A stretch of DNA of 64,000 bases, taken from Bispira polyomma (taxonomy: Eukaryota). The number at the start of each line of letters is the position of its first letter. Within the stretch, counting starts at the first letter, position 1. The notes under the pieces were generated by a model. That model did not search any database. It had not been told where the DNA came from and worked only from the letters and a program-made list of their open reading frames with translations. A program made the position numbers and the translations under genes. This document shows, in pieces, positions 3,346 to 61,070 of this stretch. The stretch is from NCBI GenBank assembly GCA_965649765.1, contig OZ287751.1, forward strand, positions 99,510,001-99,574,000, written 5' to 3'.

Positions 3346-4223
3346 CACAGTTTCTATTGCTTTAGTTTCACTAAGTATATTCCAATAGTATGCGCTGACA
3401 TGAAATCCACTTATAGTTGGGATGAAACACACACACAGAGGAATTTACAAACCAATTTCACTTTCCCTACTTTTTAAATACATCATAAAACTTCGGGGAG
3501 AAAAACGGGGCTTTCAATATTTGTGCACTTTTTTTTCTGCACAAATTCTCTGAAGTTTGTTTATCAGTATGAGACACAACTGACTCCAGGCCAGTTTTAC
3601 AAAAATGAATGAATTGTTATTCAAGAGTACAAGCAAAATAAAAAAAAATCAAACATCATCAGAGAAAATAAATCTTGATAATGACTATACATTTCTACAC
3701 TAATTGCCAAAAAAACACAAACTTTGAAACATAACGACACAAACTCTGTCAACAATTAATTATTTAACACTTTATTATCCATTAAAATAATGTATTTCAT
3801 TTTAACACATGGTTTTTGGCTAGGCTGTTATTTCAAAATAGGCCCCAGGTGATTTTAAGTTCCACTTCTGATGTTAGAATACCCCAGGTTTTTGGCATTA
3901 GTTTTGGAGTAGATTAAAATATTTTGGTATAGTTTGATTAAAGTTCGACTATTTTTAACTAATGAAAATATGGTTAAAAAAGGGGGTAACACAACAACCT
4001 TTTAAACAGTCTACAATCCAAAATCTAAAGAGCAGAAGCTCTGTTCTGCTAATGCCTAATCAAGTTCTGTCATGCGGTTTACATCATAAAATAGTGACAA
4101 CAAGATGAATAACACATTGGGGCATTTTTATTAATACATCATTACATATTAGTAACAATCACTAAGATGGTTAAAACTACCAGGTTAGTCTGTTAGCTAT
4201 ATACAACAAGTTCCTAAACCCAA

Positions 4224-6944: not shown

Positions 6945-7876
6945 GGATCCCTGTATAACTTACTTTAGTGGCAGTTTGACACTACTGTTACTGATATCAT
7001 TGCCTTGCTTTAGCAAAGCTCTATCCTTGTAGCCAGTATCTTGAATTGTAAAATTTTTACAACACATATTCTCATCCTGACAGTTATGATTTTCAGTACA
7101 TTGTAGAACGAGTACATTATGACTATCTGGTTGTCCTTCCTGCCTAAAATCACTAAGATTGTCACTCTCATTAAGCATTTCATGCTGTGACTGACTACTA
7201 ACTACATAGCCACCAACTGTGTTATTTTGATTACATACACTTAAATGTTGTTTGTGTTTAAAATCTTTTTGTTCACTAAAAGATTCTGCAACCCGAGAAT
7301 TTAACTGCCTGTCATTACACAGAGCTGTGTGTGAAGGCAGGTTTTGTGACAGAAACAGCTGATTCTGATTTGCAATACGAATCCTTTATATGGTGAACAT
7401 GATTTTTATGACATCTCACTGGGTAATTTTTACAATGTATTTTGAGGGACGAACTCCCGCTGTGTTGAAGATCTACTGCTACCGAGCTGTCATTATTCCT
7501 GCCTGGATTAATATTTTTTAGCACTGAACATCTATCAGCTGATATGCAGTCATACTTCAACACACACGTAGTGCGTACTTTGGCCTCAAAACACTCTTTC
7601 TCTCCAATACTGGAGTGATACTCGTCGTCACATACAGAACCTCTGCACGTGGTTTACACATTGAACATTATTAACACTGTCACACAAATCTACAGATACA
7701 GGTTCACTCCAAGGGGTGTGATGAGTGCCCAGCACTCGAGTTCCATTAGACACATGTTTAGAAACATTAAAATTAGTTTTTTTACTACTAAAATTGTCTT
7801 TGTAGAAGGCAACGCCATAGTGTTGGTGGTTTCAGTTCGGGGTACCAGTCTTTTGTCACGCTTGATTGCGTTTCCC

Positions 7877-7884
7877 TATATAAA
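7877..7884 (+). promoter_or_regulatory. Putative TATA box of element A
   Basis: TATATAAA ~45 nt inside the left terminus; copy G has CATATAAG at a similar offset. Confidence 0.35.
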
Positions 7885-8052
7885 TCAATAAAATTTCAAA
7901 TCTCTTTCTTTACACCAACCGTCAGCAGAGGAACAACATTGAATTAATACTGGAGATTTGTGGCAGAGAGTCTTGGTTTTGTTTTAATATACTTGTTTAC
8001 ATTTGTTTATATTCGTTTTAGTATTTTAGTGTAACTGTAACTGTTTCTCACA

Positions 8053-9120
8053 ATGCCACGAGTAAAAGTGTATGGTTGTTCCAAATGCATGGAAAGGCAT
8101 GCCAGACCAGTCGGTACCAAATGTAGTCGTGTGTTAAATGAGTCCATTTCCGAGGACGAGCTAGTTGATGGGGCGGATTCCGTCGCTCCCAGTGGTCTGG
8201 CGGAGGTTTCCAGTAAAATTTTACTGCAATTACAGAGCATGGGTGACATGATGAGTCGGCTTGATAAGCATGTTCTCCTCACTGAAGCGGCTTTGGTGAA
8301 GGATTCACCCAACAATTGTAATGGGAGAGATAAAAATTCTGTTCAAAGTACCTGTGAAAATCCCAATGCTGACGGCTCGAACACTGACGCAACTGTAGGG
8401 AGTGGACATACGGATCAAATCAGTGCTGTCAGTGTGGACAGTGTGGTCCCGACTATTGAGTTTCTGCGAACAAACACCAGTATCCAAAGTCAGGTCGAGC
8501 AACGTCTTAGTGAACTTAAGGAGCTAAACGAGAATCCGAAAAAAGGTAAGATCAAATCACAAAGAGGGGGTGGCGTTGATGTTTTAGTGAAAAGAGTGGT
8601 CGAATGGCCCCAGAATCACGTGTTGTCCGGAAACTTTAAAACGCGACCCAGTTATGACGATCTTTCTCTTAGTCAATGGGTATGTGGGTTTACCCGCATT
8701 ATTCAAGATGAAAAAAAATCGGAAATAAAAGAGATTATGTTGGATTACATGGCGGGCTTAATGGAGGACTCCCAGGATTTTTCCTGGGAGGCCGCCAAAG
8801 CCTGCCATGCCGTGGTGTTAACCACCATGGAAATGGATAAATTGAAATGGACAGAGGTCGAGAAATTAGATAGGTTTCGTCGCGCCCATGCCCAGAGGCA
8901 TGTATCAAGCAGTGGTAGCAGCAGTACTTTCACGAGGGGTGGGAGTAAAAGTACAGGCATGGGGAGGCAGGGCTCGGCCAATTGCAAATTTTATCAGGAA
9001 GGTTCCTGCAAATTTCAGTCTAGCCACAAGAGTGGAAATACCTTCTTTAAACATGTTTGCGAAACATGTGCTGGGGCGCACAGGAGTGCTAATTGTACCA
9101 AAAAACAGTCAAAAAACTGA
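8053..9120 (+). CDS. Gag-like protein of element A
   Basis: 355 aa ORF. N-terminal CxxC..H..PVG..C motif and C-terminal Cys/His cluster (CKFYQEGSC..H..HVCETC..H....C). Homologous to decayed ORFs in B, C, F and G (KIKSQRGG, WPQ, DFSWEAAKACH). Confidence 0.85.
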   Translation: MPRVKVYGCSKCMERHARPVGTKCSRVLNESISEDELVDGADSVAPSGLAEVSSKILLQLQSMGDMMSRLDKHVLLTEAALVKDSPNNCNGRDKNSVQSTCENPNADGSNTDATVGSGHTDQISAVSVDSVVPTIEFLRTNTSIQSQVEQRLSELKELNENPKKGKIKSQRGGGVDVLVKRVVEWPQNHVLSGNFKTRPSYDDLSLSQWVCGFTRIIQDEKKSEIKEIMLDYMAGLMEDSQDFSWEAAKACHAVVLTTMEMDKLKWTEVEKLDRFRRAHAQRHVSSSGSSSTFTRGGSKSTGMGRQGSANCKFYQEGSCKFQSSHKSGNTFFKHVCETCAGAHRSANCTKKQSKN

Positions 9121-9211: not shown

Positions 9212-9916
9212 ATGTGTCAATACTATCGTGGTAAGAAGTATAACCAGAGTTATAGTGACATAGTAAAGCGATCTGAATGCAGGCAAGCATCTGAGGCGAG
9301 TTCTACTTGTAGTAAAATTGCCAATGTCGTTCGGTACGTTAAAAGTCGCACCTTCACTAGACAAAAGAGTCATAGTGACATAGTAAAGCGATCTGAATGT
9401 AGACAGGCATCTGAGGCTAGTCCTACTGGTGGTAAAATTGGAAATTTCGTTCAACACAGTAACAGTCGCACCTTTACTAGACAAAAGAGTTATAACCTCC
9501 ATAGGGTGGGGTCCGGGCCAGATCCCCACAGTACTACCCCCCACAAGGGCAATACTAGTGGGGGGAGGAAAAGCACTGGGGAGGGCGAGGCTGGGCTCTC
9601 ACTTACAAAGCCAACAAAGGGGCATGGAGGAGTGCGTCTTAATAAAAACAATCAAATAAAGTTACAGAACAAATTTGCTGTGCTTATGTCTCCTGGCTCG
9701 ATGGAAGTACGTGTGAATGGCGTGGGACAGCAGGTGTCATGTTCTGGTAATAAAGGTGTTATGCACTCACGTATGAATGCGACAAAAACGAGAGAAGGAA
9801 AAACAAATAGTAGCGAACATAGTAGTATTAGGCAGGCCACTGTGTCCAATGTGTCACTGTGGCTCGTGGGGGTACTGACAACCATATGGTTAATGACAAA
9901 TATGCCCTGGCCCTGA
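9212..9916 (+). CDS. Low-complexity basic linker ORF between gag and RT (probably the N-terminal part of Pol)
   Basis: 234 aa, frame open from 9155. SYSDIV and NKFAVL motifs parallel TYAQVV and NRFTPL in the same-position ORF of copy C (24147-24686). Confidence 0.55.
   Translation: MCQYYRGKKYNQSYSDIVKRSECRQASEASSTCSKIANVVRYVKSRTFTRQKSHSDIVKRSECRQASEASPTGGKIGNFVQHSNSRTFTRQKSYNLHRVGSGPDPHSTTPHKGNTSGGRKSTGEGEAGLSLTKPTKGHGGVRLNKNNQIKLQNKFAVLMSPGSMEVRVNGVGQQVSCSGNKGVMHSRMNATKTREGKTNSSEHSSIRQATVSNVSLWLVGVLTTIWLMTNMPWP
9246..9495 (+). repeat. 120-bp in-frame tandem duplication (~2.1 units)
   Basis: AGAGT(T/C)ATAGTGACATAGTAAAGCG at 9246 and 9366, partial third copy at 9486. Encodes the 40-aa repeat SxSDIVKRSECRQASEAS...SRTFTRQK. 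Confidence 0.9.
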
Positions 9917-11706
9917 AGCAAAAAATTAACAAGAAAGAACTTTTGAGTAAAGCCAAGGGCAATTTCACTCACTGCAAATGGCGTAGCCAGAATAGGGTTG
10001 AATACGGTTTTACTCCCCTGTCCGACTTGTGCTGTAGGGTTTGGGATAGGGGAGCCGAAAATTACAGTGCTGACATTTTAAAATTGCATCAAGTACTAAG
10101 AGAGGATGGGAGACAAAATTTTAAGGGACTGCAGCTACCCGTTAAGTCGCAACTAAATCCGGAAAAGTGGTTTCAATACTTGAAATCTTATTGGGATTGG
10201 CAGCTTCCCTTATTGGTCAAGTACGGCTTCCCCCTCGATGTGAGGCGCGAAAATATTACTCAATCAGACGTCAGTAATCATAAGTCGGCTCTAGAGTTCC
10301 CAGAGCACGTTGACACGTATTTAAAGGAGGAGTTGAAATATGATGCTATTCTGGGCCCTTTTAAGGATCCCCCTATACGAAACATGCATTTTTCTCCCAT
10401 GATGACCCGTAATAAATCCAGCTCCAGTAATAGGCGTGTCATTGTGGACCTTAGCTGGCCAATTGGTGAATCAGTGAATGCAGGGGCTTCTCCCGCTGAG
10501 TATCTTGGCACAAAATTTTTACTGTCTTATCCGTCAGTGGATAGTCTTACTAATAAAGTGCAGAAACTAGGCAAAGGTTGCAAGATATTTAAGGCCGACA
10601 TCAGTCGCGCATTCAGGCACGTGCCGATTGATCCGGGGGATATTGATCTGTTGGGCTTAAAATGGAATTCTTACTATCTGGATAGGGCTCTCCCGTTCGG
10701 GTTCCGGAACGGATCCACTATTTTTCAGCGAATTTCTGACGCCGTAAGATATATCATGCTTCAGGAAGGCTGGCATATACACGCATACATCGATGATTTT
10801 TTATGTGTTGCCCTCCCAAGTAAAATTACAGATATATATAACAGGCTTCAGGCCTTGCTCAATGAATTGGGTCTTACTGTTAGCCCTAAGAAATTAGTGC
10901 CCCCGAGCACTGAAGTAGTATGTCTTGGTATTTTAATTAATACTGTGGATTTTACCACGTCTGTTCCAAGTGAAAAAATGTCTGAGATTAAAGACTTATG
11001 TAAAATATGGCGCACTAAAGAGAATTGCACTAAGAGAGAGTTGCAGTCATTACTTGGCTCCCTTCTGTATATTTCAAAATGCATTCGATATGCCAGAGTG
11101 TATCTCAATAGAATGTTGCAACTGCTCAGAGATAATCATACCAGAAAAAGGTTTACACTGACAAATGACTTTAAGAGGGATCTTAACTGGTTTTGTACCT
11201 TCATGCAGCAATTTAATGGCACAAGTTTCTTTGTTCACAGGCCTATCGATGCTCAGGTAGAGCTAGACGCGTGTTTAACTGGGATGGGCGGAATTTATGC
11301 TGGCCAGGTATATAAGTTATCTGTTCCAAAAGAAATGGCAAACCATAATATTGCTTCGTTGGAAATGATTAACATTCTAGTAGCACTCAAATTGTGGGTG
11401 AAACTGTGGCAAGGAAAGAGGGTACTATTTAAATGTGATAACCAGGCCGTGGTCAGTGTGTTAAACAGTGGTCGGACTCAGGACCCCATTTTGGCAACTT
11501 ATACTCGAAACATTTACTTGTGGGCCAGCCGATTTGATATCGACGTGAAGGTCATACATATTCTTGGGGTTAAGAATAAGGTCGCAGACCTCCTGTCCAG
11601 ATGGGACAGAACGAAATTGAATGCACAATTGCTGCATGAATGGGCGGGCCCAGTGGTGTGGCTTCCCACTAGTGAAGCCTTGTTACAGGTAATTACGGAT
11701 ATCTAA
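9859..11706 (+). CDS. Reverse transcriptase-RNase H of element A
   Basis: 615 aa. RT motifs RRVIVDLS, KADISRAFR, LPFG, YIDD (10786-10797), CLG. RNase H motifs LDAC, LEMIN, CDNQAVV, NKVADLLSR. No methyltransferase domain after RNase H. Confidence 0.95.
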   Translation: MARGGTDNHMVNDKYALALKQKINKKELLSKAKGNFTHCKWRSQNRVEYGFTPLSDLCCRVWDRGAENYSADILKLHQVLREDGRQNFKGLQLPVKSQLNPEKWFQYLKSYWDWQLPLLVKYGFPLDVRRENITQSDVSNHKSALEFPEHVDTYLKEELKYDAILGPFKDPPIRNMHFSPMMTRNKSSSSNRRVIVDLSWPIGESVNAGASPAEYLGTKFLLSYPSVDSLTNKVQKLGKGCKIFKADISRAFRHVPIDPGDIDLLGLKWNSYYLDRALPFGFRNGSTIFQRISDAVRYIMLQEGWHIHAYIDDFLCVALPSKITDIYNRLQALLNELGLTVSPKKLVPPSTEVVCLGILINTVDFTTSVPSEKMSEIKDLCKIWRTKENCTKRELQSLLGSLLYISKCIRYARVYLNRMLQLLRDNHTRKRFTLTNDFKRDLNWFCTFMQQFNGTSFFVHRPIDAQVELDACLTGMGGIYAGQVYKLSVPKEMANHNIASLEMINILVALKLWVKLWQGKRVLFKCDNQAVVSVLNSGRTQDPILATYTRNIYLWASRFDIDVKVIHILGVKNKVADLLSRWDRTKLNAQLLHEWAGPVVWLPTSEALLQVITDI

Positions 11707-11742: not shown

Positions 11743-12720
11743 GTGGTGGAAAGTTTGCTGACCAGCCTTGCCTGTAGAAGGATGCATACAGCTCTGGCTC
11801 CGTCCACATCTTCTGCTTACAGCAGCATGTTTAAGATCTTCCTAGCCTTCACCATTTTTATGGCTTGGCCTAATGCTCAGGTGAATGTGTTTCAGTTACT
11901 TGCATTTCTTGAATTTTTGAGCTTTAACTGTGTGTCTCCTTCTCAGATTGCAAACTATCTTTCAGCTGTGAAGGCCAAGTGTATTCTGTTTCATTTAGAC
12001 GTTGAACCGTTTTCTGATCCAAGGATCTCGTATTACAGCAGGGCTTTGCTAGTAAACAGGCCTTTACAAGTAAAGCTGAAAAGTGTCTTCGATATCCCAT
12101 TAATGTTAAGTGTAGTACAAAAATGTCATTTAACTTACATGGGCCTGATATTTAAGGCTATGTATCTCACCAGTTTTTTTAGCTTTTTACGTCTCTCAAA
12201 TCTATGCCCTCATTCCATGGCCTCATTCTCACCGCTTAAACATCTGGCCAGGGGAGACGTGTTCTTCAAGCCTGGGTATGTACTGTTAATGATAAAGTGG
12301 AGCAAGACAATGCAGACTAAGGATGCTGTTAAACTACTGTCTCTTCCTGCTCTTCCGAATTCAGAGTTATGTCCGGTGGCTGCTCTGAGAGCTGTGTTGG
12401 CTGTATCTCGTGCTGGCAAGAATGCTTCTTTATTTCAATATAAAGTGAAAGATTCATGGGTTCCCATGACGGATAATCGAGTTAGACGGCATTTAAAAAA
12501 TATATTACAGATGCTGAATCTTCAGCACTCCAATTTAACTTTTCATTCTCTCCGGCGTTCAGGTGCCACGTTTGCGTTCAACAATAATGTTCCTCTACAG
12601 GATATTCAGCGACATGGCACCTGGACGTCGGACTGTGTTTGGCGTTATATTACTGATTCCGCTTTGGTTGGCACCCAGGTGGCTGACTCCTTTTCGGCTG
12701 CCCTACGAAGTACCTCCTAA
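11743..12720 (+). CDS. Tyrosine recombinase of element A
   Basis: 325 aa with the complete catalytic set: R (FLRLSNL), K (WSKT), HxxR (HSLRRSGA), HGTW, Y (WRY). ORF opens at GTG directly after a TTTCAG acceptor-like site. Confidence 0.95.
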   Translation: MVESLLTSLACRRMHTALAPSTSSAYSSMFKIFLAFTIFMAWPNAQVNVFQLLAFLEFLSFNCVSPSQIANYLSAVKAKCILFHLDVEPFSDPRISYYSRALLVNRPLQVKLKSVFDIPLMLSVVQKCHLTYMGLIFKAMYLTSFFSFLRLSNLCPHSMASFSPLKHLARGDVFFKPGYVLLMIKWSKTMQTKDAVKLLSLPALPNSELCPVAALRAVLAVSRAGKNASLFQYKVKDSWVPMTDNRVRRHLKNILQMLNLQHSNLTFHSLRRSGATFAFNNNVPLQDIQRHGTWTSDCVWRYITDSALVGTQVADSFSAALRSTS

Positions 12721-12832
12721 AATTTTTTGGGCTTGGTGGTTTAGATTTTTCCTCTCACCTAAAACTTTATAAATCTACATGTTTAAAACATGAAAAATAA
12801 ATGTCAATAAAATTAAATTATCACACTATATT

Positions 12833-13153
12833 GGGGCATAAGGTCACCCTCCTGTGGGGAGCACATAATGTACTCCTCCATCTAACTTTCTAAATCTTTG
12901 AATTTTAATTTCACTTAGAATTGCCTAAATTGTCTAAAATTTCAAATTTCATTAAACTTTAATTTATTCACTTAAACTTAAAATTATAGTATTCTTAAAC
13001 TTAAATTCCATTTATGGTCACCTTTTTCTGTTCCTAACTTATGGTCACCCTAACTTAAATTTGAAATCTCACTTAGGGTAACCTCATCTTGACAATTCCT
13101 TGTTCTATGGTGACCTTAAAATTTGTTGCTTTCTTAAGGTTACCTTATGCCCC
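12833..13153 (+). repeat. 3' palindromic repeat array of element A (GGTNACC core) enclosed by a 16-bp inverted repeat
   Basis: GGTNACC cores start at 12842, 13016, 13043, 13077, 13109 and 13138. GGGGCATAAGGTCACC (12833-12848) is complementary to GGTTACCTTATGCCCC (13138-13153) at 15/16 positions. Confidence 0.9.
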
Positions 13154-13300
13154 TCTTCTTAATGAGAAACTGTACATAGTAGTTTTAACCCTGTAGTGTA
13201 CTAATAAAATTATGAACCGCAATCTTTCTCTGTGTTGATAAATATATGAATAACTAGTTCATACCTGGTTCCTGGGAACTGTTATACTTGTTCATATAAT

Positions 13301-14345
13301 TTACACACGTGGACTTGGAGGATCTTTTGTCTCCCCGTTTTTTGACATTCTATTACATTCACATTGTTTGTGGGGCAGAAACCTTTTTAAAACAATACAA
13401 AACAAGCATGTTTCATCATTTTTTCCCCCTCTTCGTGATCTACATGAGAGCTGCAAGTGTTGTTATTAAACTTCAAACAAATGACTTCCTTTGTCCCTTG
13501 CTCCGCAGAATATTTACCCCACTGCTGATATTCGTTGCTTTGTAACGTGCGTTGCGAATTTTGCATGCGAATTCAATCGTCTCAAAATTTAGCCAAATAG
13601 ACTTGCCACGCTCCATGGTTTGGAGAACTACTCTATGAGCTTGTTTAACCATACCCCAGTTGGTCTCCATAGCATCCTGCATTAGCAGTTTTAAATATTC
13701 TAGCATATTGTCCTTGACCTTTTTACTGGTTTCTTCCTGTACACAACCAATGAACCCAAACATAAATTGGAAGGGGGTAAGCTCTTCGTACTTGGGATTT
13801 CTCCCACTGATACCAGTATAACAAAACTCATGGGGCCAACCCACGTGGGCCTTATTCTTTTGCTCATTAACACGTAATAAACCTGATTTAGTTTTGTTCG
13901 TACCTGAGTCCCCGTTCACAACCATGTAATTTCTTGATCTGTAACTGTACTTGCTTCTGGATCTCCTCGTTGTTCTTCAGAAACTGTGGATCTGGCATGA
14001 CACTGTCATTCTCTTCATCTGATGAATTCTCGTGAATAGTAGCTGCCTTTCTGGTAGACACGTGGAACCTTTTGGAGCCATGGCCACGCTTGGGTGAGCT
14101 TTGCAAGACAGCACTGAGAGAATGTTCATTCACCCCGTCTATTTTTGTCTCTAGACGTTTATTGTGCTCCTCAAGAGCAGCAATTTTTTTGTAAAATCAA
14201 AGTTAATGGATCAGCCCCTGTGGTCACAGACGTGGCCCGCTCAGTTGTCTAGTTTCTCCTGCAATTCCTCCCCACAGGATGCACGTGTAGTGGTTCTTTC
14301 CCCAACTTCTCACACGCTGTACAGTGAAACGTTCTCCTTCTAGAA
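13301..14345 (-). pseudogene. gag of element B (frameshifted)
   Basis: CTAC..HVHPVGRNC near 14330; ORF pieces 13888-14133 and 13473-13925 (WPHE, MLEYL..LMQDA..W); ends HKQCEC..SKN. Confidence 0.8.
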
Positions 14346-15747: not shown

Positions 15748-16938
15748 TTAACATATTGTACTAGTAGTAGCCACACAAACTTCCAAAGAAGGTCCAGTTT
15801 TATTGCAGTCTTGGTTTAATTGCACATTTTCAGACCCTACCTCATCTTTCCGCACACAACATCCAAATGCCTTATTTAATGACTGCCTAAAAAGAGGATA
15901 AGTTATACTCAGTATGACTAGATTCACTGCCATCCCCGTGTTCACGTTCACAAGATACTCTGCCAGAAAAAGCCAGAGGCGAAAGTGAGAGCTGACATGC
16001 AATTTGTCTTGGGAGGCATAATTTTTTTTGATGAACTCCTTGTTGATGTAGAGCACTGTCTTCATCATATCGGCCGGAACTTGGCAGAGTAAAAAAACGA
16101 TAAAATACACAAAGGTTGCGTGCCTTAGCTGGGAACTGTCTGATTGGAAAAGTGGTGTAAGTTCACGTTGAGACTTATAAATTGCACGCAACATGAGTAA
16201 TAGTAAGATGCCAATGACTGCAAAGGGCACCGCATGGTTGGTAATGATTTCCAGTATCCGGACCTCAGGTTTATTGCGGAATTGTATTGGTAAAGGCACA
16301 CACAAGGGCCCCCTAGAGAGATATATCACTCCCACAGTAAGGCTGGTGTTTAGGTAGATTACTAAACTTACAACTACCATCAGGCAGATCACAATCCTCG
16401 CACGCATCACCGTACACATTCTGGGTGACTCTGATGGCCACGACATAGTAATATACCTATCCACGCATAGTGCAACGGCCAGCCATATGGACAGAAAAGA
16501 TGATATATTGCACAACATATCCACCAGCTGACAAAAAATTGGTCTATGGTAGATGTTATAGCCAAGAATGGTTAACCACTTCAGGAACAGCATAACAAGG
16601 TACAGGCCATTGGCGGTAGATATAGCGCAGAAATAGTGGCTCGATGAAAACTTTCTGAGCTGCAGGCCCATGGTTCCTATGGACGTGATCACATTAGCGA
16701 CTGTTCCTAGGACAACAAGAAGTGGTGTGTACCACACCTGAGTCTGGTGGACAATTTCTCCCAAAGAAGTTAAGCTGGCCGGTGTGTCCAATAGTGTATC
16801 AGCGATAGACCATACACTCTCTTCCTGGCCATAGCTGTTGTGAGACACAGTGGAAGGCTCTGCGGTGGTCACTAAGTGTGTTCCATTCTCCAGAACGGTT
16901 TGTGTAGACACAAATGATATATGGATATCCATGCTCAC
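15748..16938 (-). CDS. Class A (rhodopsin-like) GPCR, peptide-receptor-like orphan, uninterrupted CDS
   Basis: 396 aa with seven hydrophobic segments, TM1 GTVAN, conserved TM3 Cys (FCQL), DRY motif, ECL2 Cys, TM5/TM6 prolines and helix-8 FR. Acceptor-like TTTTAACCCCACAG ~210 nt upstream of the ATG. Confidence 0.9.
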   Translation of the reverse strand: MSMDIHISFVSTQTVLENGTHLVTTAEPSTVSHNSYGQEESVWSIADTLLDTPASLTSLGEIVHQTQVWYTPLLVVLGTVANVITSIGTMGLQLRKFSSSHYFCAISTANGLYLVMLFLKWLTILGYNIYHRPIFCQLVDMLCNISSFLSIWLAVALCVDRYITMSWPSESPRMCTVMRARIVICLMVVVSLVIYLNTSLTVGVIYLSRGPLCVPLPIQFRNKPEVRILEIITNHAVPFAVIGILLLLMLRAIYKSQRELTPLFQSDSSQLRHATFVYFIVFLLCQVPADMMKTVLYINKEFIKKNYASQDKLHVSSHFRLWLFLAEYLVNVNTGMAVNLVILSITYPLFRQSLNKAFGCCVRKDEVGSENVQLNQDCNKTGPSLEVCVATTSTIC

Positions 16939-21144: not shown

Positions 21145-21350
21145 ATGAGGCCACTTTAGTGAGAATAGAGTTTAAGTTAAAGCTAGAATAAATGTGACTT
21201 TACGTCTACTTAAATTTTGAGTTTAAGTTTGAGTTTAAGTTTAACAGAATTTAAGGTAACCTTAACAAATTTACATACTTAAGATTGGCCTTAGCCTTAC
21301 ATGTGTCTAGTTAAGGTAACCCGATAATTTCGACTATAAGGTGGCTTAAA
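21145..21350. repeat. 3' palindrome array of element C
   Basis: Perfect TTAAGGTAACCTTAA at 21251-21265; variants at ~21149, 21280, 21311 and 21337. Confidence 0.8.
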
Positions 21351-28306: not shown

Positions 28307-28556
28307 GGGGGGCCACGGTGGCCTAGTGGTTAGCAAGCACTGCGCTTCACAATCACTGGTCTCTCACCTCTGGGTGGCGTGAGTTTGAATCCTGTTGATG
28401 CCTATGTGGGAAAGGTGGTAGTTTCTTACTGTGGGCCGCTGGTTTCAGTGCAGAACCTTGATCAACTGTATGCAGTGTTTCCCCCATTGTTTTGAACTAC
28501 CCATCCCAATATAACCTAAACAGGTACTGGACGTTAAATATCCAAATAAAAAAAAA
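28307..28556 (+). mobile_element. tRNA-derived SINE (same family)
   Basis: Aligns end to end with 1979-2246; imperfect TSD ACAA..ACAAGGG. Confidence 0.9.
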
Positions 28557-35988: not shown

Positions 35989-38900
35989 TGTCAGTTTCCC
36001 CAGGTTAGGCTAATTATAGAAGCTCATTAGGCAAACCAGTGGCACCAAACTTTCCCGACAAAATTGTTTACCTGCCCAAGAATAAACACAATTATCCTTA
36101 TTCTGGGATAAAACATTAAAGGAATAACAAGTAAAAAAGAACTACATTCTCTTTTGGACGCCATCTTAACTATTTTACACTTTACAAACAACCAAAGGAT
36201 ATTTTAACTTACAGATGTTTTAAAGGACGTTTTTACAATTGTATATTTATAAAATGCTTTTAGAAAGACAATTACATATTAGTGAGTTTGTATATTGAAG
36301 TGGTGTGAAATACAAGGATAATACAATGACTGTCACGGCTCTACTGTATACAAATCATGGGGCCTAAAGAGCAGAGTAATAAACATAATATCAGAAGCAA
36401 GAACAAGGAGCAGTGTCATAAGTGTAATGCAAGAGATCGAGTGCCGGTAGAAGATCTCTGCCTCAAGGATGGACCAGCAGATCAGACCCTGTCGGCCGGA
36501 TAAGACAACCCAGATTAGTCTAATGTACAGGTGCCATCTACATCTAACCAGCAGCAGGAAAGAAGGGTAACCCACAACTACACTGCCAAAGGCAAGTACA
36601 CAAGTATTATTCAGTACATGAAAGCAGTGTTGATAATTGAAGTTATAGTAAGCTAGGGGTCAAGGACCACCTAAAGCCAGTGCTAAATAATTAAATTGTC
36701 CACAATATAAGGCATATAGAGAGCCATGTGTACAATGTGGACTCTAACATGTCAGATTTATTTAGTGAAACGCGTCAGACCCAGGAATGTTCTAATAATA
36801 ATGAGGGTGACCATAAAATTAATGTTAAATCGGCAGTAAAACAGGGTCAGTTTGGTGATGGGTTCCAAAGTTCCACCGTGAGTGCCCCTGCCACCATAAA
36901 CCAATTAAGTCATTGTGTAAATGTTTATGGGGAATTGAGCCTGCTAACAAAAGGGGGGAACTTACAGGAGTGGCTGAGGGGGTTTATACCAATTACGCCA
37001 GGACCACTTTTACAACTTCTCCCACACAAAAGGGCCTTGTGATACAAAGCAGTGACATGGTACAATGGGTTAAAAATTAAAAAGGTGTGCCTAATTACAA
37101 GGGAGCCAGAGTGTCTGTGCCCTCCCAATTAAACATACATGCATGGCATGCTTATTTAAAAGATTAAGACCACTCAATTGTTTGTGTTACCTCCAATATG
37201 GGTTCCCCTTAGCACTTGATTATAGTACTTTCCAGTACAACACACAGGTGGATAACCACTCGTCAGCATTGGCATATCCAAGTAAGTTACAAGGCAATGG
37301 TGGGACCTTTAAAACTAGTCCTTTCAAAAAATTACACATCTCACCATTAATGTCTAGGCCAAAACCAAACGGTAGTAGAAGAGTAATTGTGAACCTTTCA
37401 TGGCCATGTGGCATCAGTGTCAATTCTTGTATCCCCAAAAAGTTGTTTGACAATATTGAATATCAGCTTAAATATCCCACAATTGACAATATTGTGGACA
37501 AAATAGCCAGGTTAGGCTATACAAAATTGACTTATAACGGGCCTATAGGAACTTAAGGACGGACCCTTTTGATTATCCTGTCTTAGGTCTCATTTGGGGA
37601 GGTATATTATATGTGGACGTATCAGTCCTCTTTGGCCTTTCTTCTGGTGCATGCGCCTGCCAAATGGCAACTGATTGTATAAGATTCCTTATGTACACAA
37701 ATAATTATTGGGTATGCTCATACCTGGATGACTGCATAGGGGTTACGCCTCCAGGAAAGGCTAGGCTGACCAGTTAATGAAGATAAGGTAAATACCCCCA
37801 CAACTGAATTAGTTTGCCTAGGTATAAACATAAACGCTGACACAGGGTGTGTTACAATTCCAATGGACAAATTAATTGCCACCACACTCACCACACTCAC
37901 AGGGTACATTACTGTATTAAAACATTTCTTCCAAATGTATGACCTACCCACAAGTGCCTTGCAACAAAAAAGTGGCCCTTGTCATTTAATCAGTGTCAAA
38001 TAATGCACCACTTACATATAAGATTAAAGGAGCCGTCTCCCCTCAAAAACTTCAGCAGTTAATTGCCTTAGCTTCTGGGTTCCCCGGGGTCAGGCTTTTA
38101 GGCTTTTTCGGTTTTTACAGGCTGGCTACACTAGTTCCCAGCACAGCAGCCCAGTTCCAACCTTCCCGGTTTCCAACCGAAAGTGACGTGGTAGGGGGCT
38201 CACCTGGGGCCCATATTCTGACAAAGTGCGCCAAAAACATGCAGACGTCTGGCCAACTGCAGGTGGTACAGGTACCAAAGCTCCCTGGTTCAACATCTGT
38301 CCTGTTAAGGCTCTTCTGAACATTGTTCCTAAACACCCATCAAACAAAATTCCTTTATTTAAATATTTACACAAAGGTACTACGGTTGTAATCACTTCCT
38401 ACCAAGTGAGAAAAGTCCTTACTGGGCTATTGCATAGGCTCGGCTTCCCTCCTGCAGAATTGGAGTTCCACGCGCTCCGTCGGTCGGGGGACGTCATGGG
38501 CCTTCGACCATAATGTTGACTTGGATCACATAAAGGTGCACGGCAGTTGGAGGTCAGACGCCATTTGGCGTTACCTCATAAAAACACCCACAGTGCCTGG
38601 TAGGGTTGCAAACACATTTACAAAATACCTTTAACCATAAATTAATACCCCTACCTTTTGGGTTAGGTTATTTAAGTACATACGTATATAAGTAAACCTA
38701 CAACAATAGTGTAAATAGTTTAAGTAGTAGAGTTAACTAACAAATTAGTGGTTAAACCTTAATGCTAGGGTCACCTCAAAACACCAACCGGGGTGACATC
38801 AACTTAAGCTTGAGATAACCCTAACCTCTAGTGTAAGGTCGCCTTTAACATAGTCTAGTGGCTTGCCACATGGTAACCTCAACTTCAATTAAGGCTAACT

Positions 38901-39148
38901 TAGTTAAGGTCACCTTAAAGTCACAAGTTAAGGTTATGGCTACTTTTGTAGGTGACCTTATGTTAAGTAGATTAGTCGTGATATATACACTTTATAGACT
39001 AATATATATATATATTTGATGTTGTGTATTTTAATAAAAGCCCAAATATGTTACAAATTCGTTATTACTCTGTGTTATACCTTAACGTGCCTTCCAATAA
39101 TCTTGGATCATCTTAATCTCTTACTTGGACAACCTGGGGAAACTGACA
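35989..39148 (+). mobile_element. YR retrotransposon copy E, internally deleted, with perfect 18-bp terminal inverted repeats
   Basis: TGTCAGTTTCCCCAGGTT (35989-36006) / AACCTGGGGAAACTGACA (39131-39148). RT pieces 37143-37880 (SRRVIVNLSWP, YLDD); YR pieces ~37890-38634 (FHALRRSG, HGSW, WRY). Closest in motifs to copy B. Confidence 0.9.
38750..38963. repeat. 3' palindrome array of element E
   Basis: About 9-10 GGTNACC-like cores (38769, 38792, 38814, 38837, 38872, 38893, 38908, 38932, 38952), including TTAAGGTCACCTTAA with its core at 38908. Confidence 0.85.
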
Positions 39149-40139: not shown

Positions 40140-40324
40140 AATTCTGGGTTGTGCAAGTACAGTTAGTGTAACCTTAAGTTAAGGTGTTTAATATGTATTG
40201 TTATGTGTGTGTTTAATAAACAGCCCAAATGTTTTATAAACTTGTTTGCTTTTCATTATTTAACTTATCACCTGTTTTAGCTGGCAACTCCGCCACTTAC
40301 CTTGGCATTGGCTGGGGAAACTGA
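40140..40324 (+). mobile_element. Relic 3' end of another YR element (H)
   Basis: TAACCTTAAGTTAAGGT, then AATAAACAGCCCAAATG, and terminal CTGGGGAAACTGAC, all matching the 3' end of E. Possible decayed RT/RNase H upstream (39450-40070). Confidence 0.6.
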
Positions 40325-46864: not shown

Positions 46865-48480
46865 CAGTTTCCTACAAGATGATCTTGAATATTGATGGTA
46901 TGTGAAAAGTTAGTAAAAGAGGAAGAGTGGGGATATTAGTTTTAATGATTAAATTAAATTCCTAACATTTATTTACATACTGAGTTGAGAGGGCACCTTA
47001 GAAGCATGCATTTCAAATTTGAAAAAATAAAGTCACCTTAAATTGAGATGACAACTTAAGGTGACTAGAAAATGTAATTTGAAACGAAGACTGGCCTTAA
47101 CTTTGGATAATAAGGCTACCTTAAATGTAAATAAACTTTTGAGTTTAGGGTAACGTTAAGTCTTGGTAAGGTTACCCTAAAGAGTTTATAAAGATGTATG
47201 AATTAAGTTAAGGGTTAATAAGAAGAGTGCTAAGGTCGCCCCAAACATTTATATGTAAGACATTCTAAAGCATGCATGATGTTTTATATAAAATATATGT
47301 AAATAGGGACCCAAAGAAGACTCTTGAATGCAAAGCTCCTTGCTCAGATGCATTGTAGTCATACAAAATATACTTCCACATGCACTCCGACGTCAAGGTG
47401 CTATGACTCTGTATGTCCTGGAATGGTTCATTGCTATTAAAAACAAAAATGGCACTAGATGTTTAGGCCTTTATGTTGTTTGAGTGGCTATCTGTCTTAG
47501 ATGAGAGGGCACATCTGCAATTATATTGACCAATCGACATGTAATATACCATCATGGACTTGGACCCACTGTGGGTTAGGTATTAAGTTGATTAGTTTGT
47601 TAATATTATCAGGCGTGAGTGGCCATTTATACAGCAGATCCGACACATGATTGTCTCTGCCTAGTGTATGAATAGTTCTTAAGCTGATATCGACTAAGGC
47701 AATTTCCATAAAAATGTTTCTTGCCACAGCTGACAGTGTCAAATCTTTAGTCTTACCCGAGCCCAAGATTCCTACTACAGCTGCATTATCACACTGAATA
47801 ATGAGTCTCTTGCCTGCCCATAGGGATTTCCAGACCTTTATAGCCACCTAAATGCACAATGGTGAGGTACAGGTAACCCAAAGGGAGTGAATGCTCCAAA
47901 CCTAGTCATTGAACCTACCCCTTAGGCCCTTGTAGGCATGCATCCAACTGATTTCAGTCAATGGTTGGTTCATGGTAAAAAAGGCTGTGCCATTGAAGAC
48001 AGGCAAAATTTTGCTGAACTAGTTGATGTCCTAATAAAAACTCAGTTCTTAATTTGTAGGAGTGAAGTCTTGCATGTTCACTAAAACCCCAAGGCAGGTA
48101 GCTTTGGTTCCAGGATAAACTGGTTTCTTTTCACTAATGACAAAGCCAAGTTATGGTAACAAGTGATACAACATGTCAAATGACTGTCTACTTTCTAAGG
48201 GGCTGCCATACCCAATGACATCTTCGGTGTAGTTTGTCATGTTATACCCATGATGCTTCCTGATAAATCTGATGCCATCGCTGAAAACTCACGCAATCAT
48301 GTCTAAAGCCAAACAGCAGACAGGAATAGACGTAATATTTGTCAAATTAAAGACCCTGAAGGCTGTAGTCAGCTGGGGCCATTTTCACGTCAATTTAATA
48401 TAATTAAGTACCACATCCAAGCCGACAAATTGTGCTTGTGATTGTATCAATAATAGGCAATGTATAGGCCTTATCTGAAG
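46865..48480 (-). mobile_element. YR retrotransposon copy D, heavily deleted
   Basis: RNase H ORF 47521-47847 (CDNAAVV, NHVSDLL); RT relics to ~48480; YR reduced to N- and C-terminal stubs (47330-47514); array 46990-47243; CAGTTTCC terminus at 46865. Confidence 0.85.
46990..47243. repeat. 3' palindrome array of element D
   Basis: About 8-9 variants, e.g. GGGCACCTTA, AGTCACCTTAA, TTAAGGTGAC, TAAGGCTACCTTAA, TTAGGGTAACGTTAA, TAAGGTTACCCTAA, TAAGGTCGCC. Confidence 0.85.
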
Positions 48481-54059: not shown

Positions 54060-57000
54060 TACATGGTTCCCTTGGCGTCGTGATCACCTTTCTTGGGACA
54101 AGTACCCTTCTAGTAGTACCTACATAAGTACTTTTCTCTTGGAAGTGCATTGGTGTGATTTGAAGTGTGGGTGGTAATTAATCAATAATTTAGTACATTA
54201 TTGATTCTGGCAACCTTAACTTAACACTCAGTCTTTCAAGTTAAGGTTGGTTTGACAGTGAATTATGATCACCTTAACATCATTTTAAGGGAACCTTAAT
54301 GTTATCTTAATTTAACATTGATACAATTCTTGTTAAGGTAACATTAACATGTGTATAATTTTGAAAATATTGATTAATAAGTAAAATTTATAAACAGTAA
54401 TAGCATAACATAACAGTAAAATTTCCCTCAAGCCCAACAGTAGTGTAGTGCTGCACTAAAATAAGGGCTGATGTTGCTGAGGGTTATACAACTGAAACAT
54501 GCCACACAAGGCTCTGTATGGACAGAGGTGTGATTCATCTAGCTTTGGGAGACTAATGACAGTGACATTCTTTATGTCTTGCACTGTCTTAGTCCATTTT
54601 ATTAAGACCTTGACAAGAGACTTGGTGAAGAAGACATCACCTCCTGCCAAGTGTCTGGTGCTGTCAAAGGTATGCAAAGAATGTGAGACAATATTTGAGG
54701 CTCTAAGAAAATGCTTTTAGAAACACAGCCTTGAAAACCTTGCCATAATCCATTTTTACATAGTGCTACATCCATATTGCTTCTACGTGTTACTGATACG
54801 GGTCTATTAATTCTAATTGCTATTACTTGATTTTGGGTTGCTCAAGGCACTAATAGATGCATTTTGCCTTTATGGCTGATATATATTATTTCTAATCATT
54901 TTGACTGAGACTTTACTTACCACCAAACATTCCATAAAGGCCAACACTACCTCAGTATTGATATCTGCTAATTTAACTTTGACATGTAAACAAAATGACA
55001 CAAAGTTCTTGAATAACATGCTGTAACATTCCTGGGTCTTTGGTAGAAATGCCTGTTGCACACTAGAACCTGTCCGACCTGACAACCTTGCCACCATAAT
55101 GTGACCTACAACAAAGTATAGCATCAATAGTATCATTAGTTATCAGTATGTGCTGTACATTATAAGTCATTATCTAATTTTAACATTTCAATATACATAG
55201 GAAGCCATACTGGCTGTTGCAAATACATTAATAATTCACTATTATTTGCCACTGTATTCTGCCATCCAGACCGGAGATTGGCAGTTCTATTGAGTTTGCC
55301 CAGGACATGGATGTACTGTAGTACAGCCAGATACCACACATTCCTGGCACATGCCCCAGAAAATGGGTCCCTGGCCCTACCTGACTGCAGCACTTTCACT
55401 ACAGCATCATTGTCACATTTAATTGGCACTTATCTACCACTCCAATGATTGTAAAACAACCTCAAGGCAACAAATATATTTATCATTTCTAAATGAACAA
55501 TATGTAGCTGTTTGTAACCCTTAAATATTCCAAGGTGGCATACCATGTCTTTCCATCTGCCCCTAAAACCTGTTAGGCAAACATCTAGTTATAATATAAA
55601 ATCAGTGTTTTATGGTCATACATTAATATGCCATTGTATGTTGGCAGAAATTTAGCAAATTATCTCAAGTCCCTAAAGAAGTCTGCAGTCAACTGAATTT
55701 TGCATCTATGCTGGCTTATTCTCAAAAGCTCCGGCATCCTGTTTAAGAAGAACCTGGCTGGATTTACACATTTGTGTACATACAGTAGCACCCCCAAAAG
55801 GGATTGCAACTGCCTAAGAGTACAAAGTACCTGGATTGCCATTCCTTGACAACTTCATTAATTTTTTGCAACTTATTTTGGGAAATCGAAATGGTTCCTG
55901 TTTTCATATTAATGACTCCCAAACACACAGCCTGCGTGCTAGGGTGTATAATTTCTTTGCACTAATCGTGAGACCTAAATTTTCCAAGCATTCATAGAAC
56001 TTGTTTGCTATAGCGGGCGTGTCGTATCCAATATAACCGTCAATGTAATTGCCCTTTGTTTTATTTATTTATTCAAATAGGCTTTTATGTCTTTAGGGAA
56101 ATTAACAGCAGACATGTGGTTTTCCACCTCCCCCACCAAATCAGTTGAATTTGCCAGTTTTGGCGACGGCATATATGCCTTAATGGGATCACTCATTACT
56201 GGGGCCTGAGTTTGAACAATGTCATGGTGAAGTGGGTTGGATAATGGAACAAAGCTATACTTGAAGTCGGTTTGTTCTTTTCATCGTCTGTGTGCTAACA
56301 CCCTGTCCACTAAGCTTGTTTGCATAATATTGAATGGACAAATTTATCACCCTTACCATTTCTATTTATGTCAAACAAATGGGTTTGTTTCCCCTAAGCC
56401 TTTTGTTTCAATTCACTACTGTTGCACTACTACTAACTTCATCTGCAGATGTATTCTTACTGGCTAATTAAATCCCATCACCACTATCTTTTATCACTTC
56501 TTAACACCTCTTTTGTTACCCACACTTTCATTGTATCCCCTACATTGTTGGCAATTTGGGGACACTTACTTCAACACTCTCTTAATGACACGTCTGTTTT
56601 TGTTGTTTGCCCTAGCCCCCTTAGCTTTTTACCCTAATTTTTTTTGCTATCAATTATATTGAAGCAGTGCACATACCTAGTCACATACCTTTTCCTTTCT
56701 ACATGTTAACAAAGCCTCAATGTTTTTCTGCCAGTTTTTAAATTCTATAAAACTCGTTTACATGAGCATAATTTCAACATTGGACCTGTCACAGAAAACC
56801 GTGTTTTTAAAACTTTTTGCTATTCTACCTTTTGTAAAACACATATCACCAACACAGTGATCAAACTTCTGAACACATTTTTTATCAACAACATTACACA
56901 ATACTTGGTTAATCTTGTCTGGAGTATATACCTCTCTTTCCTTATTTACAATGCTGCCCACTTCTCTTATTAAAGGGGAGCGCCTGGCTGCTTGTTTTTT

Positions 57001-58192: not shown

Positions 58193-61070
58193 CAGTTCTC
58201 GGGGACCTGACTGTTACTATTATGGGATGGCTCGTATCGCCATATAAGCCAGCGCCGACTAAATGTTCTCACCTTTTAACTATTCTGTATACAGAATAGA
58301 AGCAGAGTAAACACGCCTCTTCTTTTGGTTGACAAAGAGTCAGAGTTTTTATATGTATATGTGCTTTTATTTTCCATTCTTTTTGTATTTTAACCTCTCC
58401 TATACTCTAGTGAAGCCAGTCTTTGATTGCGTAAGTGTCTTAGAAAGCACGAGCAGCCCATGAAAAGGAACAGGCTGGAGAGAGCTCCTGATGGCAACTT
58501 GGTCTTGATTGCTATTTTATAACAACTGCACTCACTCAGCCAAGTGATGGAGTGAATAGACCAGCGGGTGTAGCTCATGCAGGCAGCTCTAGCTTAAAAC
58601 CACACCAGTGAACAGGCCAGTAATTTACCTAATGATGCTTCAACTTCTGGTTCTGTAGACCTGCCTATACCCGCACTACGGTAGTAAAAGCCAGACTGTG
58701 GCCAGTAATGTTGTCCCGAGTGTCGATTTTCTAAAACAAAATGTACAAATTCAGGCTTAAGTGGAGCAGATATTAACCGAGCTTAAGAACCTGAACGAGC
58801 CATTATCAGGTAAAATTTAGTCACAGAAGGGAGGCTGTAGTAAAGTACTAGTAATAAGAGTAGTAGATTGGCCTCAGAACCTCATATTAACTGGATGTTC
58901 TAAAACTCGGCCCAGCTAAGACGACCTCTCGCTAGTTTAGTGGGTATGCAGAATTACACAGATAATGCATGAACAAAAAATCTGCTGAAATTAAAAATGC
59001 TGTTAGAGTACATGGATAACTTGATGGTGGAAGCAGACAATTTTTCGTGGGAAGTGGCCAAGGCCTGTCACAAAGTCATCTTTACTAATATGTTGGATGC
59101 TTGTCCACCGGAATGGGAGGCAATTATGCAAATCAGGTGTATGAAATTAAAATGCCAAAGAAATGACTGCAATGAATATTGTTTTTTTTAGAAACGCTGA
59201 ACATACTAGTTGATTGAAATTATGGGTAAAAATTTGGACTGAAAAAAAATTCTGATAAAATGCTATACTCAAGCTGTAGTCAGTGTGCTGCAGACTGCTC
59301 GCACTACAGATCCAACTATGGCTACCTATAATAAGAACATACATAAGTTTGATGTAAACAAGTTTTGCACATTTCAGGTGTCCAAAATAAGGTTGCAGGT
59401 TTGCTTTCCAGATGGCAGAATGCAGAAAGTGATCATGAACTCTTATATAAAATGGTGGGTCCAGTACAATGGCTCCCCACATATGCCAATTTATTGCAGG
59501 TTAATAACCTCATATAGTTTATGTGTTTCAGATATTCATCCAGTCAATTTCCTTCTTACTAAAAATGCTTTTGGGAGGCTTCATTCTGCATTCACACTGG
59601 CCACAACCAGGGCTTATGACAGAATGTTTAGGCAGTTCATTGCTTTTGGGGTGTTTGCGAACTGGCCCCCTAACAAGGTGACTACATTACAAATACTCGC
59701 CTATTTGGAATTTTCTGCCACCCATATTGCTAATCAGCTTTCAGGTATGAAAGCCAAATGTGTACTATTCAATATTGATGTGCAATCCTTTGCTAATCAA
59801 AGAATTGCTTATTATAACAGAGCCCTCTTAAGTCACAGGCCTCTACAAGCTATACTTAAGTCAATGTTTTACCTTCCCTTGTTGTGTGGCCTGGTGTGCC
59901 AATGTGATCTGACTCATATGGGCCAGATATTTACAGCGGTGTATCTCACGAGCTCCTTTAGATTTCTTCACTTGTCAAACTTGTGTCCCCATTTCCTTGC
60001 CCGTTCTCGCCTCTTAAACAACTGGCCAAGGGGGGGGGGGGGGGGATGTCTTTTTCAAACTAGGTTATGCAGTCCTTATGATCTAATGGTCTAAAACCTT
60101 ACAGATTGACGACGCCATTCATTTGCTTATCATTCCAAGTTTTGTGCACAGTAGGGCCCTTAGAAACGTTCTGGCACTAACCACGGAGTCATATTATCCC
60201 CCTTATTATAATATAGATTGGGTACTTCCTGGGTCCCTCTTACCGATTCAAGAGTCCATAGGCACCTAAAAATGACCTCAAGTTACTCGGCTTGTCGGAT
60301 TCGGGTTTGACTTTTCACGCATTTCGGTGTTCAGATGCCACCCTTGCATTTAATAATAATGTCAACATCCAGGACATTCAAAAGCATGGCACCTGGACAT
60401 TCGACTGTGTGTGGCGTTGTATCACAGATTCTGCCTTAACTGGCTCTGAGGTTGCGGATTACTTTCTCTCTGTAATACTACCTACTTCCTAGAAAATATG
60501 GTGTTTAGTGGTCTGACAAAGGCAGTCGTCTCTTCAAAAATTCTAGATGAACTTTCTTATAAACAGTATATACAAATTTTCCACTCAGTAAACAAAGTTT
60601 CCTTCCTGGGGCATAAGGTCTCGCTTCAGTCTCTCAAGCACATAATGTACTCATTCATTTCAATCTCAATTCTGAAACCTTAAAGTCCAACTTTAAATTG
60701 ACATTTCAATTTCAAATTTGAAACATTAAAGTTTCGCTGTACAATTTTTAAATTAACCTTATTTCATCTAAAGATTAGGGTTAACTTTAACTCAAACAAA
60801 ATTTACAGTAAGCCTCAACTTTAATTTAAAGTTCAGGCTTAAACTCTTTCATTTGAAAATTTCACTCAATGTAAGTTAAACTTAGACTGAAGCTTAGATG
60901 ACCTTATGCCCTCCTCTTCTTTTAATTTGATAACTGTATATAAACTTTTTTAATAGCCTCATATTACATTATATTTAATAAATATTTAACCGCAGTCTCT
61001 TTACTTCTGTGTCTTAACAATGGTCAAATAAGTCAAAAATTTCATCGCGTAACTTGTCCTAGAGGAAAAT
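58193..61070 (+). mobile_element. YR retrotransposon copy G (A-like family), RT deleted
   Basis: Left end CAGTTCTCGGGGACC resembles that of A. gag relic 58400-59100 (DNFSWEVAKACH); RNase H tail 59270-59510; YR 59532-60492 (FHAFR, HGTW). 3' block shares GGGGCATAAGGTC, GCACATAATGTACTC and ACCTTATGCCC with A. Confidence 0.88.

Follow-up and report, generated by a model that had tools for sequence, protein, structure and literature searches.

Many Ngaro-type tyrosine-recombinase retrotransposons carry, in the B terminal repeat behind the recombinase gene, an array of short palindromes that forms a conserved cis-acting module of this repeat. The array was investigated starting from a 64-kb window of the Bispira polyomma genome (the whole stretch of 64,000 nucleotides analyzed here), in which a tblastn map based on the proteins of one element, copy A (gag, pol and recombinase), revealed at least seven related elements. 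The repeated unit is the dyad TTAAGGTNACCTTAA, 13–15 bp long and of the form TTAAGGT-N-ACCTTAA, which occurs in 3–8 copies per B repeat. We tentatively regard the dyads as duplex docking sites for a dimeric protein, preferably the head of the element's own Gag or recombinase, which would serve as accessory sites by the joint between the B and A repeats (B|A joint).

The identity of the elements was established from coding capacity and repeat layout. Consecutive open reading frames (ORFs) of copy A match Pfam RVT_1, RVT_3 and Phage_integrase, with the recombinase downstream of reverse transcriptase/RNase H on the same strand. No Pfam match to a methyltransferase domain was obtained in these ORFs, a missing match being weak evidence. 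Neither terminal inverted repeats around copy A nor their DIRS1-like combination with an internal complementary region were found. Searching the window's own genome (1.035 Gb) gave more than 40 copies of the 3′ region of family A, and dot-plot comparison of the full copies L031–L033 shows that their repeats are direct and split into A and B parts. Split direct repeats in the order A1-[ORFs]-B1-A2-B2 are also present in the loci L052, L053, L057 and L061 of another assembly, described below. This organization defines the Ngaro retrotransposons within the DIRS order (PMC9210276, PMC8547959, PMC4157794). The array-bearing elements are thus Ngaro-type, with the layout A1-ORFs-B1-A2-spacer-B2. They share with Ngaro the gene order gag, reverse transcriptase/RNase H, tyrosine recombinase and the internal A and B copies downstream of the recombinase, and differ from described Ngaro elements in a unique non-coding stretch of about 700–1,100 bp between A2 and B2 as well as in the palindrome array in B. 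For family A the full layout comprises A1 (147 bp), the ORFs, B1 (546 bp), A2 (147 bp), about 708 bp of unique sequence and B2 (546 bp).

Within the B repeat of copy A, a leader of about 95 nt is followed by the array, about 55 nt, the AATAAA signal and about 75 nt to the end of B. The array lies wholly inside B, and full copies consequently hold it twice; the same location was found in all five families with mapped repeats. Since it is situated 3′ of the recombinase and upstream of AATAAA, the array is part of the 3′ untranslated region (UTR) of the transcript. The array precedes the B|A joint by 130–290 bp, and in the five families the last site is 135–290 bp away from the end of B. This joint is presumed to be the end-to-end junction of a circular intermediate. 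The A repeat contains a TATA box, and where B is followed by A the array stands about 215–530 bp upstream of the A-repeat promoter. Copy A itself ends exactly at the end of a single B, A2, spacer and B2 being missing, and a second B was not detectable in the other window copies. Such single-B copies could have arisen by recombination of B1 with B2 or by the integration of a resolved circle. As to RNA evidence, the array sequence was met only in three DNA-like contig runs, which consisted of fragmented repeat contigs with no informative joints. As a separate observation, a G/T-rich tract of the TTGGGGYTT|GGGG type spans the start of B1, 10–30 nt after the recombinase stop, in all five mapped families. 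This is the position where a polypurine-type plus-strand primer site would adjoin a long terminal repeat (LTR).

The initial annotation had described six GGTNACC-cored palindromes behind the recombinase of copy A, five of them closely spaced, with arrays at the same position in copies C to G. This description was confirmed. The last five sites of copy A follow each other at 27, 34, 32 and 29 nt, and the GGTNACC core occurs 26 times in the window compared to 9.9 expected from shuffles. With up to two mismatches allowed, all 25 window matches to TAAGGTNACCTTA fall into the seven intervals annotated as arrays (1,583 nt in total) and none into the other 62.4 kb of the window; the reversed control of the motif gives 6 matches in the window. 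The arrays of copies A, C, D, E, F and G each follow a recombinase frame, on its 3′ side and in the same orientation. In copy G, the closing inverted repeat is accompanied by an additional family-specific stem of 10 bp beyond an internal loop. The array stub H stands as a single site with two mismatches and could not be linked to any element. Copy B is an exception among the window copies and carries no array. The coordinates are collected in Table 1.

Table 1. Palindrome arrays and element features. Positions refer to the 64-kb window unless a locus is given.
Feature	Position	Strand	Basis or remark
Copy A sites, GGTNACC-cored, n = 6	12839, 13013, 13040, 13074, 13106, 13135	+	Sequence scan
Copy A, left arm of closing inverted repeat, GGGGCATAAGGTCACC	12833..12848	+	Inverted-repeat search; overlaps site 1 (12839-12851)
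Copy A sites 2-5 (starts 13013, 13040, 13074, 13106; 13 nt each) with AT-rich spacers	13013..13118	+	Motif scan
Copy A site 6 (13135-13147) and right closing arm GGTTACCTTATGCCCC (13138-13153)	13135..13153	+	
Copy C array, 2 good and 3 weak sites	21146..21349	-	3′ of recombinase 21420-22241
Copy E array, 7 sites with <=3 mismatches	38766..38960	+	tblastn map, motif scan
Copy D array, 7 sites with <=3 mismatches	46988..47243	-	tblastn map, motif scan
Copy F array, 5 sites with <=3 mismatches	54206..54346	-	tblastn map, motif scan
Copy G array domain, inner sites decayed, closing inverted repeat GGGCATAAGGTC / GACCTTATGCCC retained	60609..60911	+	
Stub H, one 2-mismatch site, no element tied to it	40164..40176	+	
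Copy B, B repeat, 208 bp, zero palindrome sites	4007..4214	-	Recombinase 4224-5201 (-)
Copy A, A1 split direct repeat, 147 bp, TATA box at 7877	7801..7947	+	Repeated directly after B1 in L031-L033
Copy A gag ORF: N-terminal C-x2-C-x3-H-x2-P-x4-C knuckle, long helix, C-terminal zinc knuckles	8053..9120	+	
Copy A pol region: ORF2 and reverse transcriptase/RNase H-like ORF	9212..11706	+	Pfam RVT_1, RVT_3
Copy A tyrosine recombinase ORF	11743..12720	+	Pfam Phage_integrase
Copy A, B split direct repeat, 546 bp	12737..13282	+	Dot plot against full copies
AATAAA polyadenylation signal inside B, then CA and TGTGT-rich stretch	13203..13208	+	Same layout in other families
G/T-rich tract	12724-12745; L052:7010-7030; L053:7003-7022; L057:6897-6915; L061:5983-6000		

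In the genome as a whole, perfect 13-mers occur 7,312 times compared to 90 for the reversed control, and pairs of perfect sites 8–38 nt apart 503 times compared to none. Around 24 recombinase 3′ ends, 103 sites were counted within 800 nt downstream and none within the preceding 800 nt of coding sequence. At ten of the first 15 places with such close pairs a recombinase frame lies no more than 1.5 kb away, with the array downstream of it every time; the other five resemble detached B repeats. This genome-wide sample comprises 15 loci found by the pattern and 30 family-A loci and was therefore partly located through the motif itself. The arrays belong to two clades, closest either to the recombinase of copy A or to that of copy B, the latter being about 29–35% identical to the former. 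Families with a recombinase identity of only about 29% share the same 13-mer and their spacers are not alignable, which is in accordance with the initial annotation.

Further elements were reached via protein homologues in two other assemblies, ERZ22147071 with several families and ERZ25073805 with one element in which only the closing repeat is present. In the former, L052, L053, L055 and L057 exhibit an equivalent repeat layout with 3–7 sites in B1 and B2 alike. L061 contains one full site together with several AGGTCA/TGACCT half-sites in other arrangements, and no palindrome sites were found in L062 and L063. The element in ERZ25073805 (L054), with 58% recombinase identity the closest relative of copy A, keeps nothing of the array but the closing inverted repeat GGGCATAAGG ... 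CCTTATGCCC, with arm starts 55 nt apart. L052 shares at most 70% DNA identity with the window's genome, and the matching is confined to the coding part of the recombinase; the second host must therefore be a different one. Although the motif is identical, B regions cannot be aligned between the elements of this genome and those of ERZ22147071. In 144 kb of loci from the other assemblies the site density amounts to 6.1 per kb inside B; outside B it is 0.17 per kb and does not differ from the control rate.

Frequency was estimated from elements found independently of the motif (7 window copies and 8 homologue loci). At least three sites are present in 9 of these 15 and at least one site in 11. 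The array is common, yet not indispensable. In the B repeat of the array-less L062 (L062:5950-6463) we also observed GTTAAC three times and AGTNACT twice, with p of about 0.003 for GTTAAC as one among many words. These words weakly suggest another palindrome at the position of the array; no GTTAAC-type variant was found in family B.

The suggestion that the motif is under selection is supported by a comparison of 36 family-A copies (84–100% identity). All of them contain the same six sites with the same order and spacers, the closing arms are 305–324 nt apart in all but one copy, and lower site counts are due to point changes only. The mean minor-variant fraction is 0.016 in columns of sites and closing arms and 0.065 in spacers, a roughly four-fold difference. 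Variants of 10% or more were observed in 1 of 90 site columns compared to 40 of 231 spacer columns (p = 3e-6).

The position matrix of 103 sites is symmetric, with an information content that peaks in the core and falls off outward. T1, A2, G4, T6, A8, C9, C10, T12 and A13 are present at 92–98% or more, positions 3, 5 and 11 are less strict, and the flanks lengthen the dyad to the full form given above. The central base is C in 34, G in 35, A in 22 and T in 12 sites, and in 13 of 19 arrays the final site is centred on G (p = 0.002). Taking an exact half-site as sole anchor, a partner half with at most 2 mismatches in 6 positions is found in 71–77% of cases, and therefore the palindrome and not the half-site is the unit. 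Conservation of the second half does not depend on the central base; conservation of the left versus the right half by centre type shows a trend only (p = 0.085). TGGTGACC, which occurs in some sites, was considered as a tRNA primer site, since we take it to match the complement of the tRNA-Trp 3′ end. The idea was dropped because this sequence deviates from the consensus and the similarity does not continue beyond it. A resemblance of AAG|GT to a 5′ splice site or U1 target was likewise considered.

Conservation acts on the sequence of each site and not on base pairing within it. Departures from the consensus within sites comprise 3 compensated pairs, 20 G.U pairs, 24 A.C pairs and 53 other mismatches, hence the half-sites decay independently of each other. 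Local hairpins of single sites would have loops of 1–3 nt, and no strand preference of folding was observed, sense and antisense being equal. The scarcity of compensation, the lack of a G.U excess, the short loops and the equality of the strands fit a reading of the sequence by a dimeric protein on duplex nucleic acid. Simple local RNA hairpins, by which the RNA signals contemplated in the initial annotation might have worked, are not supported by these counts, since selection for an RNA hairpin would be expected to leave compensated pairs and, on the transcribed strand, a surplus of G.U.

According to our preferred reading, held with low confidence, a dimeric, sequence-specific protein would recognize the dyads in duplex form, and this protein would preferably be encoded by the element. 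The candidate is the Gag N-terminus. In seven families (copy A, L052, L053, L056, L057, L061 and L063) Gag residues 1–95 (window 8053-8337 in copy A) contain an invariant C-x2-C-x3-H-x2-P-x4-C zinc knuckle, from which a linker leads to a long helix. The Gag products are otherwise poorly alignable, with 23–43% identity across these first 95 residues. The helix was predicted with an AF2 pLDDT of 80–89. Profile searches of the N-terminus against PDB and Pfam returned no family match and only weak matches of the coiled-coil type. The same module may also reach the recombinase. Copy A, in which signals and frame were inspected, has a strong splice donor AAG|GTAAGA within gag (8545/8546) and an acceptor TTTCAG|G before the recombinase ORF (11734/11735), in matching phase. 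Splicing would join Gag residues 1–164 to the recombinase, and the predicted fusion would bear the knuckle and helix at its N-terminus. A head of this kind on both Gag and recombinase would be a natural dyad reader. The bound sites might then act as accessory (arm-type) sites that gather recombinase or Gag on the nucleic acid of the element beside the joint, and the closing inverted repeat together with the dyad symmetry of the domain could let duplex sites form by fold-back in single-stranded complementary DNA (cDNA) or RNA. That a protein binds, which one it is and what its binding achieves are inferences; the anatomy, the conservation, the confinement to B, the independent decay of the half-sites, the dispensability in some families and the conserved Gag N-terminus are observed.

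Known recombination systems offer a partial parallel. In phage lambda the arm sites of attP are recognized by a distinct domain at the N-terminus of the recombinase, and the internal resolution site of Tn4430 has DR accessory motifs. Similar to these, several copies of a short motif (3–8 per B) are found here, at most a few hundred bp from the presumed crossover. The lambda and Tn4430 arm sites are asymmetric; the sites described here are dyads whose number and spacing vary by family, they belong to a eukaryotic retrotransposon, and they are putative binding sites. Core sites of a tyrosine recombinase are not what the dyads resemble, the centre being 1 nt and the element ending 130–290 bp away at the B|A joint. 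A more specific version, in which the dyads would be arm-type sites for the zinc-knuckle/coiled-coil head of a spliced Gag-recombinase and would form a lambda-integrase-like accessory array with a core at the junction, displayable on fold-back cDNA, appears, taken as a whole, distinctly unlikely.

Several observations weigh against docking sites for a protein of the element. At least three families have no array, namely family B, L062 and L063; family B is represented by at least six copies with 92–96% identity as well as by separate B2 copies, and the array-less L063 still has the Gag knuckle. Helical phasing of the site spacing (10–11 bp) was not found, and prediction of a Gag 1–95 homodimer gave no verdict. 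A motif that stays constant despite deeply diverged element proteins fits a host factor equally well or better. L053 and L057 also have AGGTCA-type half-sites in their A repeat, which bears the promoter. Finally, dyad symmetry on the level of the whole domain is superfluous for binding to ordinary duplex DNA.

Among the alternatives, binding of a conserved host transcription factor is possible but rather unlikely. The array would then be an enhancer- or insulator-like homotypic cluster in a U3-like part of the repeat and would drive or modulate the TATA promoter of the A repeat. Arrays of host-factor sites are well known from retroelements, as in the Su(Hw) array of gypsy and the enhancer repeats of retroviral U3 regions. 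With these the palindromes have in common a homotypic motif cluster, AT-rich and non-conserved spacers and the location in a non-coding regulatory part; they differ in their strict dyad, in the position upstream of the poly(A) signal and in belonging to a repeat other than a classical LTR. Irregular spacing, turnover of sites and spacers between families and the dispensability of the array in some families would be in accordance with a host factor, and so would the constancy of the motif across two host genomes and deep divergence of the element proteins. The composition of the sites points in the same direction. A C or G centre, present in 67–72% of sites, creates TNAAGGTCA on one strand, which is an extended half-site of the estrogen-related-receptor (ERR) or NR5A type, and the TATA box in A as well as the half-sites near ATTGG in L053 and L057 would suit a promoter-directed function.

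The nuclear-receptor half-site considered in the initial annotation does, however, not account for the whole dyad. About two thirds of the sites hold TTAAGGTCA on one strand, as expected for an ERR/NR5A half-site, whereas about one third has an A/T centre and hence no AGGTCA (present in 66 of 98 sites). The two halves overlap (AGGT-N-ACCT), orphan half-sites are a minority, and a monomeric receptor leaves the conserved second half, retained at the 71–77% given above, unexplained. A response element in the form of a monomer site or of non-overlapping hexamers in direct, inverted or everted repeat was not recognized in the motif. To our knowledge, no transcription-factor dimer site corresponds to the full dyad of 13–15 bp with overlapping halves. 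Outside Ngaro repeats the motif is at background (62 kb and 132 kb examined), and a host factor also leaves the dyad symmetry at the level of the spacers unexplained. Regarding the A repeats, ATTGG (reverse CCAAT) adjoins TGACCT(T), a half-site that also occurs in the B array, in L053:2150-2180 and L057:1955-1990, and in L057 this combination lies upstream of the TATA box.

A function of the array in single-stranded form, folded back on itself or into several hairpins, either within the 3′ UTR of genomic RNA, where it is present twice, or in single-stranded cDNA, is to be regarded as unlikely, even though the domain as a whole shows clear signs of symmetry. Packaging, dimerization, nuclear export, control of polyadenylation in B1 or priming of DNA synthesis would be conceivable roles. 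The location in the 3′ UTR upstream of AATAAA would suit such roles, and the folding energy is far below that of shuffles: copy A reaches z = -6.0, and 18 families average about -4.6 to -5.1. In the A clade (copies A and G, L046, L050 and L054) the two outermost sites of the array are lengthened to GGGGCATAAGGT ... ACCTTATGCCCC. Closing inverted repeats span 12–19 nt, with arms of 18 nt in L052 and 17 nt in L041, and the minimum free energy fold of copy A includes the closing-repeat helix. The arms of L046 show matching departures from the consensus, a compensated pair that preserves a 19-bp helix, and copy G has the extension by 10 bp mentioned above. When the domain was aligned to its own reverse complement and compared with a null in which sites were fixed and spacers shuffled, dyad symmetry exceeded the null in 7 of 18 families (p <=0.02), the combined z-scores giving a Stouffer Z of about 7. 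These data provide real evidence for a predicted domain-level fold-back, in addition to the sequence conservation of each dyad.

Other results speak against structure as the function of the single sites. In addition to the 1–3 nt loops, the lack of covariation within sites and of a bias of G.U over A.C, and the equal folding of both strands, complementarity between sites of one array is on average not above that between different families (p = 0.2), and it is the sequence that is conserved rather than pairing. Complementary runs of at least 17 nt are enriched within arrays (3 of 220 compared to 6 of 4,533). A search of 12600-13400 on both strands yielded no Rfam match at E <=1. Hairpin-borne duplex sites in single-stranded replicons have a counterpart in the terminal hairpins of parvoviruses, which carry Rep-binding elements. 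A fold-back of the array would similarly present duplex recognition sites on a single-stranded intermediate; the domain considered here is, unlike the parvoviral hairpins, internal and not terminal, and its fold-back is a prediction. Within the DIRS order, a 3′ hairpin proposed for DIRS-1 and cited in PMC7192593 is a precedent for the structural reading, and the start of cDNA synthesis, explicitly described there as unexplained for DIRS-1, leaves room for a priming function in elements of this order.

It is improbable that the palindromes are a functionless by-product, spread by hairpin-induced template switching or by local inverted or tandem duplication in reverse transcription and then inherited. 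Traces of older local duplication do exist, such as a 131-nt unit in L055 and spacer similarity at a distance of 120 nt in family A, and 39-nt units are repeated at two places. Inverted duplication could give rise to dyad symmetry, and some families manage without the array. A by-product would, however, not be expected to keep its 13-mer while the spacers drift until they are unalignable, nor to show site columns four-fold less variable than spacers, nor to be found in the two deep clades and a second genome as well. The 39-nt tandem units, each with a perfect TAAGGTCACCTTA, are located outside the window at C2:149005-149211 and C2:252844-253050. The two blocks are mutually inverted and about 100 kb apart, and they look like a satellite-like amplification of a site-plus-spacer unit.

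That each palindrome is a recombination site and that units are gained or lost as in an integron or CRISPR array, the cassette-like (att) reading of the initial annotation, has its sole support in the superficial repeat-spacer appearance and is hardly conceivable given that 36 family-A copies keep six sites in identical order with fixed number and spacers, that the centre is 1 nt instead of the 6–8-bp crossover of known tyrosine-recombinase core sites, that the element ends elsewhere, at the B|A joint, and that insertion flanks are unlike the motif. The flanks of four copies were inspected for this comparison, and the idea that the motif is a target site was likewise rejected.

The initial annotation knew of no such array in DIRS1, Ngaro or PAT elements, and this is in agreement with the searchable literature, in which neither the motif nor a comparable palindrome array is described for Ngaro or DIRS elements (Repbase and Dfam lay outside that search). 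In the searchable literature on tyrosine-recombinase retrotransposons we also met no description of what the recombinase recognizes or of how the nucleic acid of the element is selected. A short and sharp motif with naturally array-less families therefore offers a directly testable handle on Ngaro function. If the binder is encoded by the element, the missing cis-trans pair of the mechanism would be defined; if it is a host factor, the link of the elements into host regulation would become visible. A two-site architecture similar to that of lambda would, if true, give tyrosine-recombinase retrotransposons their first defined recombination-site architecture. For annotation, the motif reliably marks Ngaro tails and solo B repeats.

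The window contains some further features. In the ORF between gag and reverse transcriptase of copy A, a 120-nt tandem duplication with 85% identity was found (9246-9485). A 16-nt tandem repeat array of the ATCAGTAACAGTAACA type with about 15 units occupies 32482-32732. A dispersed repeat of about 225 bp is present in three copies with 90–93% identity at 1979-2203, 28307-28531 and, inverted, 43134-43315. Amid the retrotransposon copies lies a host gene, an intronless ORF of 396 amino acids on the reverse strand (15748-16938) that encodes a rhodopsin-family seven-transmembrane protein (Pfam 7tm_1).

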